Below are positions 40,107 to 47,794 of a stretch of 64,000 nt of DNA, piece after piece. A program made the translations under genes and the position numbers. A model generated the notes under the pieces. The model was not told where the DNA came from. It searched no databases and saw nothing but the letters and a program-made list of their open reading frames with translations. Each line of letters begins with the position of its first letter. The stretch's first letter is position 1. This DNA is from Dimorphilus gyrociliatus (lineage: Eukaryota > Animalia > Annelida). The stretch covers positions 434,001 to 498,000 of the forward strand of contig CAJFCJ010000001.1 in NCBI GenBank assembly GCA_904063045.1. The letters run 5' to 3'.

Positions 40107-40997
40107 TCACGGAGAAGTATTAGGAATATCAGCCATAGAGATACTATAATCAAATTGATTAACTTGCGGTACTTCCATTGGAGTAGAGAAACATATTTCC
40201 GGCTCTTGTTCGTCGTAGTTCGGGGTGGTAGGTGGAGCTCGAAGAGAAGATAGCCGCCGACTATAACAATGCTTATACATTTGCTTAGACAGAACTGCTT
40301 CAGTGGAATAATTATTTAATTGTAATCTATATCTTTGATCAACTGTCTCAGGTGTTCTTATATGTTGACTATTTAATCTCGCACAAATCAGTGATCTTTC
40401 AATATCTTCTGTTCGCAGTTTATGCGTTTCTTTCAGTTTTTTCTTCTTTTTCATCCTCTTTTCAAATTCGGCTCGTTGTCTAGCTCTTATAACTAGTAAA
40501 TCGTCAACATCCTTTTGCGATGAACGCTCTGTGGAATCTAGGTAGAAACCTTCAAATGCTTCTTTACCATCTCTTTTCGGTTCGGCGAAAATCTGCGGTA
40601 GAATTAACTTATTCGATCGCTGACCTTGAAAGGTTGAAAAGGTATCGACCGGACAAGGAATAGGCTTCCCTAGAGGACTGACCGAAAAAGACGACTCATA
40701 TCTGGGCGGTCGGCGTAATACTTGCCTGACTAATGACCAATTTTCCTTGTCCTTCTCCAAGGAATATCCATGTTTGGGATAACCCAATAATATAGAATTA
40801 TTATGATTACTGTTTATCTTCTTCTTTGAGAACTTCCTTCCTCGGATTTCTTTGGGTAGATTTCCATTAATCTTATCTTCATCTCTTAAAATTTTAGGTA
40901 GAACAAGAGGCAAAAGCTTCGGCCTTTTCATTGATTCGTCAGAAATATCATACGAGAGGTCATCCTCCGCCAAATTATTATTAATCTTTCTCGCCAT
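40107..40997 (-). CDS. Uncharacterised basic, hydrophilic protein (296 aa)
   Basis: Uninterrupted ATG-initiated 891-nt ORF with coding-like composition between AT-rich flanks; no family recognised. Confidence 0.65.
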   Translation of the reverse strand: MARKINNNLAEDDLSYDISDESMKRPKLLPLVLPKILRDEDKINGNLPKEIRGRKFSKKKINSNHNNSILLGYPKHGYSLEKDKENWSLVRQVLRRPPRYESSFSVSPLGKPIPCPVDTFSTFQGQRSNKLILPQIFAEPKRDGKEAFEGFYLDSTERSSQKDVDDLLVIRARQRAEFEKRMKKKKKLKETHKLRTEDIERSLICARLNSQHIRTPETVDQRYRLQLNNYSTEAVLSKQMYKHCYSRRLSSLRAPPTTPNYDEQEPEICFSTPMEVPQVNQFDYSISMADIPNTSP

Positions 40998-41520
40998 CGA
41001 ATACCACCTAAGTAATTGATCATCGGCAACAAAATTTCGGCAGTATGTTATTAGAATTTAATCGAATTTATTCCTCTTTTAAATGCATTAATCGATTGGA
41101 ACGTTCGAACTAATTGACTACGAACGATTGAATATGCCCCCTTATGCAAATAGACTTTTCGTATAAAGTATTTGCTGTCTACCTAATTTCCCTATTGTTA
41201 GTTAAGCAATAGTGTGAATCGCTCTCGAAAATTTTACCTTTAACATAGGATTTTCGCAATAGATACTTGGACGTCTGTCTAACGCCTAAACGATCTCGCA
41301 AAAATATTCGATAAACTGGCTCCATCTACTGACTAATGAAACGAAAAAAAACACTCTGTCACAGTTCCATTACACTATTTTTATTCCTTTATTCCTTTTT
41401 TTTAAATATATATTAATATTTTGTCAAAAATAGCATTTAATTTTAAAAATTTAATAAATTGACTATACAAGCTTTCAACTACTCTCCATGCGGGTTATCG
41501 CTTATCCTATTACACGTTTC

Positions 41521-41741
41521 CTAAGTTGGACAGCACTTCTTCTTTCCTGCAGGTTTCTTTAATTGCACAGCACTTTGACCGGCAACCACTCTTTTAGTTT
41601 TAGGCATCCGTCGACCTGAAAAGATAACAGCAGTACAAATTTTTGAAAGTTAATCTTAAATGGAAACACATGTTTTCGCTTCATTAAATAGCAAACAAAA
41701 AAGAGGATAAGAAACGAATAAGAGAATAGAGAGAATGAGCT

Positions 41742-41772
<31 letters not shown>

Positions 41773-44700
41773 CGTACATACAGAGACAGAGAGAGACATC
41801 AGGGAAAATAGAAATAAAGGTCGTGGGATAAGGAAGGAGAGAAGAGGTTTATGATTTATTGTTATTACAGATTTAACCCAAAAACATTTCTTACATATTT
41901 CATCAAATAATTCCTTTATGTTCTCGTCATTTTTTGCACTAGTTTCCATAAATATTCCATTAACTGCATCCGCTTCGGCTTTACCGACTAGGAGAGAAGA
42001 AGGGAACATTATAAGGAATATAATATTTTGCATAAATGTATATATTTATATATATATATATATATATATATAAATATGTATTTAATTCGGTATCTTATTG
42101 CAATTTTGAAGGTGTCAGTAAATAAAAAGAAAAAATTATATTTACGATGCAAATATAACATTTTTTAAGCCACGTGACATAATAAAAAAATTATATGCAA
42201 ATAAGAGAAAAAAAATATTTATACTGACTGTGGGTTGCAATTTTTCGTTGGTCTTTCATATCCGATTTATTACCGCTTATTGCTAGAACAATATCAGCTG
42301 GACCTTGTTTATGCAATTCATCGATCCAATATCTCAGAGTTTGAAAGGACGACTGTCGAAAAGGATATTAGCAGCCATTAATTATTTAGAAGGGAAAACT
42401 TACGGCTTGTGTAATGTCATAAGCAATTATGGCAGCTTGAGCCCCTCTATAATACATAGGCGCCAACGATCTGTACTGGAAAAAATAGCGGAAAAACTGT
42501 TTAGAGTTTTAGCTTATCCCAAGGGATTTTTTTCTCGGGTATATTATCTGTTTTTTTTTTTTACCTTCTCCTGACCCGCTGTATCCCATATTTGCAATTT
42601 GAATTGAGTATCATCCACCACAATTACCCTTGTCAGGAAAGCCGCCCTGTTTATAATCAATTATATGAATGTATAAATTCATGCTGTATGCATAGTATAT
42701 CATACAATATACATGGTATATTTTATATCTATTTACATACGATATTATACTTTATATACTGTCTATAACATTTTCTATAACATATAAAATAAGCATAAAA
42801 CTAACCCAATAGTTGACTCTGCTCTTGAATTAAAGGAATCCTGAACGAATCTATGAGCTAAACAGGATTTACCTACTCCAGAATCCTATATAAATAGTAA
42901 TATAAATAACAATAATAACAATATAACAATAAGAATATTATCAATAATATTCTTAATATATTTTTTTTTTATCAAAAACAGTTTATTTCAATATTCTTTT
43001 TTTTAAAAAAAAAGAAAAATAATTAAAAAAATAAAAACGTCAATTACGATTGTTTATAAAATTGGTATAGTTAGTAAAATTATATATTTGTTGTATCGGT
43101 GTTATATTTCTTTGTTTTTCTCCTAAAGAAAATCAAACGAAAGAAATACACCCTCCTTAGAAAGAGAAAGATCATAAATAAGGTCTTCTGAACAAGATAC
43201 GAACCCCAAAATACATAAATTGATATAACGCTAAGGACTGTATAGTAAAGACCGAGCGGTAACTCGCACTGTTTTTTGTGTTTTACTTCATCATATATGT
43301 AATTGAATCCTATATCCTCTTCATATACTTCCCTAACCGGTACAGGCTTATTTAGAATGGCGGCCAGGTTATCATCGTTAAAATCGTCATATTTCGATGG
43401 TGTGAATCCAAATTTTTTCTTCTTCGCTTCCACTGTAAATTTCTTTAATTTCAAATCGTTTATACGTTTTAAATGTATGTCAGATGAGTTCCCTTCCTTA
43501 AAAATTTCACCCTCAATCATTTTCGCTGGGTTAAATTCATTTTTAACAGTTTCACTTTTGAATTTTCCGCCTTCTAACGGATAGTTTGATATATTATTAT
43601 TTCTAGAATGAATCAGATTATTAGAATTTCGTAGACTCTCTCTCTCAGACATTAAAATTGAATTTGTCTCAAAACTTTTCCCTAGTTTCCTCCCTTCCGA
43701 TAATTTATTCCTAGCAACAGGCATCGTTTTTAAATTGTGGTACGGAGTCTTTCCAAGTCTATGATTAGTTAATTTACCCTTTTTATATGATTTATTTTGA
43801 GATTTCGTATTATTCCTTATCCGCTTATAATTTATTGTATTATTTTGACGTCGATTAATGAATTTTCCTTCTCTCCCTTTCGGTTTGAGTTTAGATGCAT
43901 TGGGTGGAATATCAGCACTTTTTCCATCAACCTGTCCTTTTCTCATCATATTATATTGCCCCCACTGCTTCTTTCGTTCTTTGCCTATAGGTTTTCTATT
44001 GGGGTTCGCTAAAGATAAGTCTCTAATTTTTCGATCAAGACCTTTCTTCGGCGCTTTCGCTATGCTCTCCAATTGCCTTTTATACTTTTTAATTGGTTGC
44101 CTCCCAATAAGCGAAACTAATAAATCAGTCTTTTGAAATTGAACGAATTGACCATCAGTTGAGGATACACTACAAAGATCTCTGACGAACACAGGATCCA
44201 AAGATATTTTTATGTCATAAGATATTTGATCAAATTTAAGTGAAATCTGAAGAATTTCCCTTTCTACAAAGTCAGCTTGAAATGATCTTACTGGTTGAGC
44301 TTTGTTGTTAATAATATAAATAACATCTAATTCTGAAGAAGAGATTGGAAAAGTTATATTAGCTAATTGATTATTTCGGTATATAGAAGATTTTGGGGAT
44401 TGTCCATGGACAATTGTATAAAACATTTCGGAATTTCCGGCAGTTAATCCTTTATAATCCTTCCAATCTTTTTCCTTCCAACCACTCTCTAAATTTTCAA
44501 AATATACTTGCACATGCTCAAGTTTTGAAGTCTCTCGCAAAACTATTCTATCATAGATAATAGCCATGTTTTTACTAGCTAATAAAGATCTTTGAACAGA
44601 TTTTAAGCCTAAAGCTAAATCGTAAGTTTCAACTAACTCTGCTCTAGAATAAACGTAACCTTTACGCTCTAACCCAATTAATAATTCCCCTTTGGGTAAT

Positions 44701-46860
44701 TTTGAGAACTGGGGGCAGGAGCCCAATTGACCAGCTATAGTCCCGTAGCAGTTGGGCTTCAAAGAAGGTGAGAAGGCCATCGTTAGATCAGTTCCAGTTA
44801 TAAAAACATTGTGCTGAAAAGATAATATTATTGATCCTTGTTGGCGTTTTCGAAGCCTCGGTTTAGAAAATTGATCAATGGAATACTTTCCTTTTGCTAT
44901 TAAGTCAGTAATTTGTTGTCCCATAGGATTCCCAGCAAAAGTATATACAAACAAATCGTCTGTAACTGAACTAAAGACACCTCTATCCGAAAAGAAATAG
45001 AACGAATTTTTTGCTGGTTTAGGAGCCGGAAGAGGCTGTTTATAATAAATATATTCCATCCAGAGAGAACCAAAGTCTGTATGTCTCAGTCGCGCAGAAA
45101 TGATTGCCCTATTGTCCCTAATTGAATCGACAAGATCATTCATTGATGAGTCTTTTAAAATTCGGGAACTCATGAGAGCAAGTTGATATCCAGGACCTAG
45201 CGTCCAAGATTCTCTATACGTTTCTGGAGATTCTTTTAAAATTGGAACAACTACATACTTGTAAAGTAGACTATGCATTCTTGACCAATAGATGAACAGA
45301 TATTTTGATTGGAAATGACGATTAACCAAAGTCAAAAACTTTAATAATGTACCCGAAATATCAAGGAATTCTCTCATATTTGCTGCACCTGGTATGGAAC
45401 CGTCTTTAACGTTTTTAAGTACATGTAAACAACTTTCAAGATGAGAATTTGCAGCCAATTGCCATTTATATGAATTGGGAGCGTTCGGTATGATTATTGA
45501 GCTTACTAGTAGAGATAAATAACTACGTAAGGTTCTCGCATTCAACAGTTTTTTAGACCAAGGACAATTAGGCTTTAAGATTTCGCGATATAAATTATCG
45601 GCTTCAACTTGTATCTTGTTCAAATAGATAGATTTTTCTTTTTTCGGAAGGTTTGCATTTCCTAGAATAAAATCTGCGGCAGTTGCAAAAGACAACAGAA
45701 CTGTTCCGCTGTATTCATCTGATTCATTATTTTTATCTAAAGACCAACGATCAAGACCAGATAATCTATTGAAATACTGAACTACCTGATTTAATGATCT
45801 CTGATCATTCTTTAAAAGTGAGAAGAAAGCCATAGTTGGTAAATTATCACTGTACCTTCTTCTCCAAGAATTAACATACGTTTCATAGTCGGTTGGTGGA
45901 AGAATAGACTCCCTCCACAGTAAAGGATTTTCCATTTCCATTGCAAGCATTTGGTGAACTTGAATAGATACTGTTCGTAACTCTCTCATATTTCCTACTT
46001 CATTAGCACCAAAATGCAAACGTGGGTAACCTGCTGGCCCACCCTTTGCCATTCCACCAATTTTACCATTACACCGACAAAACAATAGCACTACCAACGA
46101 CGAGAGATATAACATCCTAATATGTTCCATTAGAAACTGATTAGATTCGATATAAGACGAAAGCAACTGAATACGGAGCAAATATAACAAAATATCTATC
46201 CACGTCCCTCACAACGCTTCATTGATTACAAATCATACAAGGTTTAAAAACAAATTTCGGCCTTTTTTTGATCAATCGCTATTGATATTGAAAAAGAGCC
46301 TACCTATATTAAAGGGTATTTACTTTTATAAAAGTTATGATTGTTCATGAAGATAATGAAAAATGAAGAGTACATCCATTCTATCATTTCAACTTTCTCT
46401 GACTTTTCTTTCACGAGAAAATCGCTTATATTTCATAATAATGAAAATAGAAGAAAGGTAAAAGAAAACAACGAGTTGCATTTTAAAATATTGATATTTT
46501 CTTGTTGGTATATGACTAACCAAATGCCATGATTGATAGGGTTTTGCTAATGACTCCCTCAGAGATAAGAAAAATGAAGGAAGTAATTACCATACAACAG
46601 AGATTTCTATTATTATTTAAGGTAAAAACAAATATACAGAATCAACCAAATATATATAGTATATGTTTTTATATATTTAGTGCAAAGTATATCTTTCTAG
46701 AACAATAACCATAATTGACCTTCTTATTTTTATCTTTATGTATAAAAAAAACTCTTTACTTATATATTCTCTATTACTTTATTTATTGAGTAAAATAATC
46801 CACGTGATAACTTACCCCTAAAAGTACTACTTTAACATCAATAATTTTTCCCTGATTCAT
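41521..46860 (-). CDS. RAB22A: Rab5-family small GTPase, Rab22/Rab31-like (196 aa)
   Basis: Seven exons (46860-46816, 42885-42806, 42646-42565, 42475-42404, 42352-42229, 41987-41895, 41615-41521) are phase-consistent. Motifs: [62 protein letters not shown], and C-terminal CCPT. Confidence 0.9.
43080..46130 (-). CDS. Dermatan sulfate epimerase-like (DSE/DSEL family) protein, intronless, nested in Rab intron 1
   Basis: Signal sequence ([13 protein letters not shown]), then [44 protein letters not shown] and FSDRGV, collinear with recalled human DSE (HPMLYFSRAEV, YLPPWDP, GFATAYDF, VTDGS, QRHF, WFYGPESQL, FEDWGV). A long basic low-complexity region and a C-terminal TM helix follow. Confidence 0.85.
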   Translation of the reverse strand: MEHIRMLYLSSLVVLLFCRCNGKIGGMAKGGPAGYPRLHFGANEVGNMRELRTVSIQVHQMLAMEMENPLLWRESILPPTDYETYVNSWRRRYSDNLPTMAFFSLLKNDQRSLNQVVQYFNRLSGLDRWSLDKNNESDEYSGTVLLSFATAADFILGNANLPKKEKSIYLNKIQVEADNLYREILKPNCPWSKKLLNARTLRSYLSLLVSSIIIPNAPNSYKWQLAANSHLESCLHVLKNVKDGSIPGAANMREFLDISGTLLKFLTLVNRHFQSKYLFIYWSRMHSLLYKYVVVPILKESPETYRESWTLGPGYQLALMSSRILKDSSMNDLVDSIRDNRAIISARLRHTDFGSLWMEYIYYKQPLPAPKPAKNSFYFFSDRGVFSSVTDDLFVYTFAGNPMGQQITDLIAKGKYSIDQFSKPRLRKRQQGSIILSFQHNVFITGTDLTMAFSPSLKPNCYGTIAGQLGSCPQFSKLPKGELLIGLERKGYVYSRAELVETYDLALGLKSVQRSLLASKNMAIIYDRIVLRETSKLEHVQVYFENLESGWKEKDWKDYKGLTAGNSEMFYTIVHGQSPKSSIYRNNQLANITFPISSSELDVIYIINNKAQPVRSFQADFVEREILQISLKFDQISYDIKISLDPVFVRDLCSVSSTDGQFVQFQKTDLLVSLIGRQPIKKYKRQLESIAKAPKKGLDRKIRDLSLANPNRKPIGKERKKQWGQYNMMRKGQVDGKSADIPPNASKLKPKGREGKFINRRQNNTINYKRIRNNTKSQNKSYKKGKLTNHRLGKTPYHNLKTMPVARNKLSEGRKLGKSFETNSILMSERESLRNSNNLIHSRNNNISNYPLEGGKFKSETVKNEFNPAKMIEGEIFKEGNSSDIHLKRINDLKLKKFTVEAKKKKFGFTPSKYDDFNDDNLAAILNKPVPVREVYEEDIGFNYIYDEVKHKKQCELPLGLYYTVLSVISIYVFWGSYLVQKTLFMIFLFLRRVYFFRLIFFRRKTKKYNTDTTNI

Positions 46861-47338
46861 TCTCCCTTGTTAATTGCGAATTGGAGTGTCAATTGTGTTA
46901 ACTGTAATTAACAATTAATCAGTATTCAAGAGCTGACTAAAGATTTTTGCGGGGAGTAGACAAACATGGCGTACGGTCACATGATCTGGTGTGTTTTTTT
47001 TACACTTCGTATAAAATTAATTAGCCAAATTTGAAAACTATACTTTACCAATTGCTATTTACTGTCAACTATAAATAAGATAAAAAATTCTTTTGACCTT
47101 CACCTCTTATTTTCCAAGATATGAATTTTATAGATCAATTTTAGCTAGCGTTAACGAAAGTAGAGTTTATTTAATTACTCATCGAAGTTTACTATGCAGT
47201 TAGGCCAAAAGTGATATTTAAAAGATTACATCTATGCTTAATGTATTATGTCCTATAATTTATACTATACTTTCTTCGCATAGATTTTTCAAATATTAGC
47301 TATAACCACCGAAAGTAAGTCTTTGGAATAGCCACTTT

Positions 47339-47794
47339 TCAATTATCCTCATCATCTTCGTCGGCTTCCTCTTTCATCAGTTTCTTTGCCAGAGCTATAG
47401 ACTGCGCTTCGTTGTAATGCATCTTCCTTTTTTGCTCGAAAGCTTTGCGTTTTTTCATTTCTTCAGGAGTTTCAAATGGATTTTCTTTTGCAGATTTCAG
47501 AGGTGCATCCTTATTTGTGTCTAGAGCTTCGGTTAGTTGGTTGGGATCTATTGCTGATGACTGAGGCTGAATATTATACTCTTCATCGCTATCGAAACCT
47601 TTCGATCTTTCGAAAGGTGTTTTTGGCTCGTCAATCTTTTGAAAACCATAATCTTTGTTAGGTGGGTGATACGTTTCCAATATATTTCCCTCATCCCATT
47701 TCATATCCTTTCTTTCCATATGAACTTTTTCTTCAGATGATCTCGGTGTTTTAAGTATACTCTTTTTTGGCTCTTTATTATCTGATGAAGCCAT
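47339..47794 (-). CDS. PPP1R2: Protein phosphatase 1 inhibitor-2
   Basis: KSILK PP1-docking motif, KWDEGNILETYHPPNKDYGFQKIDEPKTPF, and FEQKRKMHYNE; intronless. Confidence 0.95.
   Translation of the reverse strand: MASSDNKEPKKSILKTPRSSEEKVHMERKDMKWDEGNILETYHPPNKDYGFQKIDEPKTPFERSKGFDSDEEYNIQPQSSAIDPNQLTEALDTNKDAPLKSAKENPFETPEEMKKRKAFEQKRKMHYNEAQSIALAKKLMKEEADEDDEDN

Follow-up and report, generated by a model that had tools for sequence, protein, structure and literature searches.

Gene structure at the Rab22-like locus

The stretch of DNA analysed here (the window) comprises 64,000 nucleotides (nt) of the genome of the miniature annelid Dimorphilus gyrociliatus (C1:434001-498000 in the 77.9-Mb assembly), and positions given below are counted within it unless another locus is named. 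Its minus strand carries a seven-exon gene for a Rab22-like GTPase, and within the long first intron of this gene lies, in the same orientation, an open reading frame (ORF) for a protein related to dermatan-sulfate epimerase (DSE). An earlier note on this DNA had described both coding regions and had suggested that one promoter and a common first exon may serve them both; every feature that it had listed was found in its place. The host gene is composed as follows.

46816-46860, minus strand: Rab22-like exon 1, starting with ATG, 15 codons ending in VKVVLLG (strand beta-1 plus the first glycine of the P-loop); no other candidate first exon on the minus strand of the window
42886-46815, minus strand: Rab22-like intron 1, 3,930 nt, holding the whole epimerase-like gene
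42806-42885, minus strand: Rab22-like exon 2, from the P-loop DSGVGKS to TIG, acceptor ...tatatag; placed by threading the public protein model DgyrCDS91 onto the window
42565-42646, minus strand: Rab22-like exon 3, switch II, WDTAGQE
42404-42475, minus strand: Rab22-like exon 4, placed by threading the Rab part of DgyrCDS91 onto the window
42229-42352, minus strand: Rab22-like exon 5, GNKSD
41895-41987, minus strand: Rab22-like exon 6, ETSAK
41521-41615, minus strand: Rab22-like exon 7, C-terminal CCPT prenylation motif and stop codon

Exons 2-7 are bordered by GT..AG. While introns 2-6 measure 159, 89, 51, 241 and 279 nt, intron 1 spans 3,930 nt, and the earlier statement that it is far longer than most introns in the window holds within the Rab gene and also against the published median intron length of 66 nt for the D. 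gyrociliatus genome (PMC7854359). Together, exons 2-7 match positions 7-160 of the Ras profile (Pfam, E 1.4e-52) and encode the P-loop, WDTAGQE, GNKSD and ETSAK motifs as well as a protein end that reads KKKCCPT. A search of the PDB returned Rab22A with 171.6 bits (E 2e-49), Rab5A with 166 bits and Rab31 with 159.9 bits. The host is a Rab5-subfamily GTPase for which Rab22A is the best PDB match, narrowly ahead of Rab5A, and at this small margin the earlier assignment to Rab22/31 rather than to Rab5 or Rab21 is tentative. The protein resembles Rab22A and Rab31 in its P-loop, WDTAGQE, GNKSD and ETSAK motifs and its C-terminal double cysteine, but differs from them in the CCPT ending.

Since exons 2-7 lack positions 1-6 of the Ras profile, strand beta-1 must come from an exon further upstream; the alignment of these exons to Rab22A begins only at chain residue 13. 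Exon 1 contributes K-V-V-L-L-G, i.e. Ras-profile positions 1-6, and the G domain, as judged from the profile search on exons 2-7, is complete when exon 1 is counted with them. Directly after exon 1, at 46815, stands the phase-0 donor GTAAGT. We scanned 9.1 kb upstream for a first exon of the beta-1 type and obtained 46860-46816 as the sole candidate. A strict pattern, in which an ATG is followed at some distance by K or R, four hydrophobic residues and a glycine directly before GT, has exon 1 as its only minus-strand match in the window and occurs twice in 128 kb (both strands). Between the stop codon of the DSE-like ORF and exon 2 (42886-43079; 194 nt, 12% G+C) there is no ATG, which rules out an alternative Rab first exon in this interval; this was the arrangement that the earlier note had named as speaking against nesting.

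One may ask whether 46860-46816 merely looks like a Rab exon by chance. The Rab gene would then be 5′-truncated and non-functional, or would have its true first exon outside the scanned region, and there would be no nesting. The 15 codons are indeed too short for a database test: a PDB search with 20 residues (the 15 exon-1 codons and five stop-free intron codons) gave no match with a peptide of this length. Moreover, a looser pattern (four hydrophobic residues and then G, without K/R) yields 0.16 matches per shuffled 9.1 kb, or a 15% chance of at least one match in 9.1 kb. We nevertheless consider a chance look-alike very improbable, as the strict and rare pattern is matched here on the strand of the Rab gene, 3.9 kb ahead of exon 2, by a segment with a start codon and a perfect GTAAGT donor in phase 0. 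Its sequence also fits the beta-1 pattern of the Rab5 subfamily, exons 2-7 are undamaged and have canonical splice sites, and a further first exon could hardly be accommodated, given the gene for protein phosphatase inhibitor 2 (IPP-2) directly upstream.

A first coding exon that is short and ends in or close to the P-loop was also seen in each of the small-GTPase genes L005 (C6:1599400-1602100), L006 (C7:1867200-1870000) and L008 (C11:370200-372900), which from our reading of their sequences we take to be Rab7-, Rab2- and Rheb-like. In these genes the next exon follows about 170-250 nt downstream, and the split positions are a few codons off that of the Rab22-like gene.

A DSE-like gene within Rab intron 1

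The sequence enclosed by Rab intron 1 has the following features.

43080-46130, minus strand: DSE-like ORF, single coding exon with 1,016 codons from a first ATG at 46130 (ATG1); second ATG (ATG2) at 46115; stop codon at 43082-43080
46065-46115, minus strand: predicted signal peptide, 17 residues from ATG2
44472-46031, minus strand: region homologous to DS-epimerase 1, residues 34-553; catalytic positions H205, Y261 and H450 replaced
43128-43262, minus strand: two adjacent hydrophobic, transmembrane-like segments, residues 957-975 and 983-1001, from a hydropathy scan

The frame, listed as an ORF from 46190 to 43080, is intact over its 1,016 codons in DNA of about 31% G+C. It has ATGs of its own, the second of which stands directly before the signal peptide, and requires no upstream coding exon. 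The signal peptide was read from the translation by eye, and homologues and paralogues possess a similar hydrophobic N-terminus. Given the assignment of exon 1, the ORF from 46130 to 43080 lies wholly inside the intron from 46815 to 42886, and as far as can be judged from the sequence, same-strand nesting is well supported.

That the ORF is DSE-like, as proposed earlier, is borne out by its match to human DS-epimerase 1 (PDB 6HZN), which aligns to residues 34-553 over about 520 residues with an E value of 3e-29. An exhaustive HMMER search collected 73 family representatives including DgyrCDS91 itself, and 52 of the other 72 were found at E<=1e-10. The family resemblance is distant, the best non-self homologue being 27% identical and the identity to any homologue at most 27-29%. 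No family was matched in a Pfam search of the ORF, and a word-index homology search with the whole ORF or with residues 20-640 returned only DgyrCDS91, the low-complexity tail having probably swamped the index. This tail is a K/R/N-rich stretch of 290 residues that precedes the hydrophobic pair. Paired C-terminal hydrophobic segments are also present in vertebrate DSE, in DSEL-type homologues and in the paralogue P0034.

We aligned 28 sequences to inspect H205, Y261 and H450 (human DS-epi1 numbering), which we take to be the catalytic residues. In the window protein these positions are occupied by R, M and R/L, with no histidine among them; almost all of the 27 homologues in the alignment retain HNH or QNH, Y and GHEH. 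Human DSE and DSEL resemble the nested gene in their N-terminal signal sequence, their two adjacent C-terminal hydrophobic segments and their long, largely intron-free coding exon, but the window protein differs from them in lacking equivalents of the three catalytic residues, in its low-complexity stretch and in its missing Pfam match. The nested protein belongs to the DSE family by descent but ought not to be classed among the active epimerases; as a relative it is probably without catalytic function and may bind glycosaminoglycans. It is predicted to be lumenal or extracellular and to be anchored by the two C-terminal hydrophobic segments.

The genome contains three further DSE-like genes, L002 (886-3507, minus strand), L003 (1189-3312, plus strand) and L004 (1123-3432, plus strand), each of them a long single ORF, and the use of a canonical family member as query against the genome led to the same four loci only. 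An own ATG and a hydrophobic N-terminus were found in each of the three genes checked, namely the window gene, L003 and L004. The equivalents of H205, Y261 and H450 are replaced in all four DSE-like genes, so that D. gyrociliatus, going by these sequences, may be without an active dermatan-sulfate epimerase of the canonical type. Since all four paralogues are single long ORFs, the lack of introns is a family trait and is silent on retroposition; we have hence set aside a retrogene origin of the nested gene as uninformative.

The public fusion model DgyrCDS91

In the public annotation, both coding regions are represented by DgyrCDS91, a protein of 1,124 amino acids present in NCBI and UniRef, which runs from ATG2 at 46115 to 43287 and continues with Rab exons 2-7. 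No paper came up in a literature search for DgyrCDS91. The model is matched by the nested ORF with 100% identity. The two parts are joined through a splice site inside the ORF.

43281-43287, minus strand: internal phase-0 donor GAA/GTAAAA, last exon base 43287, joined to Rab exon 2 in DgyrCDS91

If DgyrCDS91 were correct, there would be one gene encoding a DSE-like/Rab fusion by splicing from 43287 to 42885. Besides the presence of the model in both databases, this would be in line with the fact that the junction is in frame, that a GTAAAA donor is also used in Rab intron 3, and that the annotation pipeline gave transcript assemblies heavy weight. The pipeline combined AUGUSTUS, exonerate, PASA and EVidenceModeler, and transcription start sites were refined with cap analysis of gene expression (CAGE) (PMC7854359). 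Several properties of the predicted chimera nevertheless speak against it. Its Rab domain would be devoid of strand beta-1, as is apparent from the missing Ras-profile positions and from the start of the Rab22A alignment noted above. Prenylation of Rab proteins takes place in the cytosol. The signal peptide of the fusion would put a Rab with a prenylatable CC motif into the lumen, away from the prenylation machinery. Downstream of the fusion donor the ORF stays open for 68 more codons, which encode the hydrophobic pair and would all be thrown away by the splice; base-composition arithmetic gives a probability of about 0.004 for a stop-free run of this length. A Rab motif occurs in none of the 72 other family representatives. 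Lastly, the donor at 43287 is the last of just three phase-0 GTRA sites in the nested ORF, and thus the expected pick of a predictor that is forced to merge the two parts, which it would be when no first exon is at hand for the Rab part. We therefore give a genuine fusion very little credence and regard DgyrCDS91 as probably a gene-model artefact or a read-through by-product.

The spacer upstream of the nested ORF and the acceptor-like site at 46166

The features that bear on how the nested gene may be expressed lie upstream of the first ATG of its ORF, as far as the donor of Rab exon 1.

46131-46815, minus strand: spacer from the Rab donor to ATG1, 685 nt, which may hold an independent promoter and the 5′ untranslated region (5′UTR)
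46166-46192, minus strand: acceptor-like site with a pyrimidine-rich tract at 46192-46167 ending in CAG; the first base after it is 46166
46323-46330, minus strand: TATAAAAG, candidate TATA box, about 195 nt upstream of ATG1

On the same strand, the IPP-2 stop at 47339 and the Rab ATG are about 480 nt apart, and the Rab stop is followed after about 520 nt by the next ATG at 40997; since the spacer exceeds both distances, it offers room for a promoter. The candidate TATA box is a weak lead: TATAAA occurs once per 556 nt on the minus strand and TATAAAAG seven times in the window, so that the motif is not significant alone.

The pyrimidine-rich acceptor that the earlier note had seen opening at 46166, in frame from Rab exon 1, is present as described. 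Position 46166 is in frame with the nested ORF (46166-46130 = 36), no stop interrupts the frame as far back as 46208, and the phase matches that of the exon-1 donor. The pyrimidine fraction of the site is 0.71, compared with 0.41-0.94 in the six real Rab acceptors, and equally pyrimidine-rich sites occur once per 354 nt on the minus strand. The earlier proposal was that transcripts from the Rab promoter are spliced either from 46816 to 42885, giving Rab22, or from 46816 to 46166 and are then polyadenylated near 42960, giving the DSE-like protein; the latter would carry a 35-residue N-terminal extension from the Rab ATG. The quality of the acceptor, its phase and its open frame fit this proposal, and a cleaved signal peptide could tolerate the extension and leave the same mature protein. 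The cholinergic gene locus and the CPNE1/RBM12 pair, both described below, moreover serve as precedents for shared exons.

The acceptor can, however, be read in another way. The paralogue L002 has a predicted 5′UTR intron of 69 nt, which is close to the genome median, with the donor CAAG/GTAAAA and a strong polypyrimidine acceptor ending 2 nt before its ATG (3507), and in L003 30 nt separate an acceptor-like site from the ATG. The window offers two donor-like sites, 157 nt (46323) and 137 nt (46303) ahead of the acceptor, neither of them above chance. In view of the L002 intron and of these local donor-like sites, a private non-coding first exon with a 5′UTR intron would explain the acceptor at 46166 equally well as Rab exon 1 does. 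Against sharing also stand the two own ATGs directly before the signal peptide, the second of which is the start of DgyrCDS91, and the preference of splicing in this species for short introns (PMC7854359). The precedents share non-coding exons, while Rab exon 1 carries the start codon and beta-1, and the AATAAA on which the proposed polyadenylation would draw is not above chance. Taken together, we consider it unlikely that the nested gene uses Rab exon 1 in this way, and the stricter proposition that one promoter and a coding Rab first exon serve two unrelated proteins, with intronic polyadenylation deciding between them, strikes us as decidedly unlikely. From the earlier proposal, the same-strand position of the DSE-like ORF in Rab intron 1 has thus been retained, whereas its use of Rab exon 1 and a switch between splicing and polyadenylation are not supported by the sequence.

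The putative 3′ end of the nested gene

At the 3′ side, the 194-nt spacer before Rab exon 2 holds a single element of interest.

42982-42987, minus strand: AATAAA, the sole canonical poly(A) signal of this spacer

It stands 93 nt past the nested stop and 97 nt before Rab exon 2, as had been reported. Its value as evidence for polyadenylation did not survive a control, since 51% of shuffles of this spacer with its 12% G+C contain an AATAAA, and the motif hence carries no weight.

A probable same-strand host/nested gene pair

We consider it probable, from the features of the sequence laid out above, that the locus holds two separate genes that form a same-strand host/nested pair and need no shared first exon. 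In such an arrangement the 45-nt first coding exon of the host would be spliced over the 3,930-nt intron to exon 2 at 42885, and the nested gene would consist of a single coding exon from 46130 or 46115 to 43080. The latter would be transcribed from its own promoter within the 685-nt spacer, may possess a short private 5′UTR intron ending at 46167, and its mRNA would end in the A+T-rich 194-nt spacer before Rab exon 2. Synthesis of Rab22 would require that the polymerase proceeds past the nested 3′ end and that splicing takes place over 3.9 kb. As polymerases from the Rab promoter must pass the nested 3′ end, some mutual interference or read-through is to be expected. An mRNA of the nested gene that extends past its poly(A) site would run into the acceptor of Rab exon 2, and such read-through mRNAs could either use the donor at 43287, which would yield the annotated chimera, or keep the Rab exons in their 3′UTR. 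Spliced-leader trans-splicing or an operon was rejected as an explanation on the published absence of both from D. gyrociliatus (PMC7854359).

Some observations do not sit well with two separate genes. The annotation, in which PASA transcript assemblies entered with weight 10, lacks both a junction between Rab exons 1 and 2 and a model for the DSE-like gene by itself; our length-limited protein searches would have missed a short model of the Rab gene. The 685-nt spacer yielded no promoter motif above chance. In addition, an in-frame, stop-free acceptor before the ATG is mildly unlikely to arise by chance (about 0.03-0.07, a density-based estimate for a site found post hoc), which would favour a shared exon.

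Neighbouring genes and other features

Upstream, the minus strand carries at 47339-47794 a single-exon gene for protein phosphatase inhibitor 2 (Pfam IPP-2, E 2e-27), and downstream, at 40107-40997 on the same strand, a single-exon ORF of 296 codons whose product is basic, rich in serine and lysine and without a Pfam match. In 41000-47500, a search of Rfam gave no match, and the only tandem repeats are microsatellites in Rab introns, namely (AG)13 at 41742-41768 in intron 6 and (TA)n at 42039-42081 in intron 5. A palindromic CACGTG E-box is located at 46801-46806 (minus strand), 10 nt inside Rab intron 1 just past the donor, and another CACGTG is found near 42170 in Rab intron 5.

Comparison with known nested gene pairs

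The closest architectural precedent for the locus is the cholinergic gene locus of nematode, fly and mammals, whose two genes, VAChT and ChAT, have the same orientation and give rise to some transcripts that share an upstream exon. There, a single-exon VAChT ORF resides in the first intron of ChAT, an arrangement that is conserved from nematodes to mammals (PMC3053374). The nested gene of the window is likewise a single-exon ORF in the first intron of its host. While the products of the cholinergic locus act in one pathway, its shared exon is non-coding and its promoters and splice forms have been demonstrated experimentally, the products of the window pair are unrelated, the exon that would be shared carries the Rab start codon, and the arrangement is predicted from the sequence. 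The genes CPNE1 and RBM12 possess common 5′ exons that are alternatively spliced, and their sharing has been confirmed by cDNA, expressed sequence tags and reverse transcription PCR (PMC2568002). As in the window, this pair combines unrelated coding sequences on one strand, but its shared exons are confined to the 5′UTR, whereas sharing in the window is a possibility with which the sequence is compatible.

Mammalian pairs of the H13/Mcts2 type comprise a nested gene with its own promoter in a long, 5′-proximal host intron; nested transcription, intronic polyadenylation and host elongation are expected to influence one another in such pairs, and mutual interference has been documented for H13/Mcts2 (PMC13309782; PMC11694760). 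The window differs from these in that its genome is compact, with a median intron of 66 nt, and in that the nested gene takes up the greater part of its host's intron. The proportions of same-strand and opposite-strand nested pairs in mouse and human have been described as 'broadly similar' (PMC11694760), which weakens the earlier remark that same-strand nesting is rarer than antisense nesting. The arrangement found here is a fresh instance of a common and well-described type of nested gene and will not surprise a specialist.

Implications for the annotation and for nested gene expression

For the annotation, the analysis implies that two proteins should probably take the place of DgyrCDS91, namely a Rab22-like GTPase of about 196 amino acids and a DSE-like membrane protein of 1,011-1,016 amino acids, and that the Rab first exon is missing from the public model. 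The fused model affects orthology tables, surveys of domain fusions and expression counts wherever these draw on it. RNA sequencing and CAGE data exist for D. gyrociliatus (PMC7854359). Should the first exon be shared after all, a compact animal genome without trans-splicing would economize here in the manner of an operon; the Rab-derived residues would join a long n-region of the signal peptide and be cleaved off. As two separate genes, the pair would provide a natural case for studying interference between host and nested gene, with a 3.9-kb intron that contains a same-strand gene in a genome of otherwise short introns.

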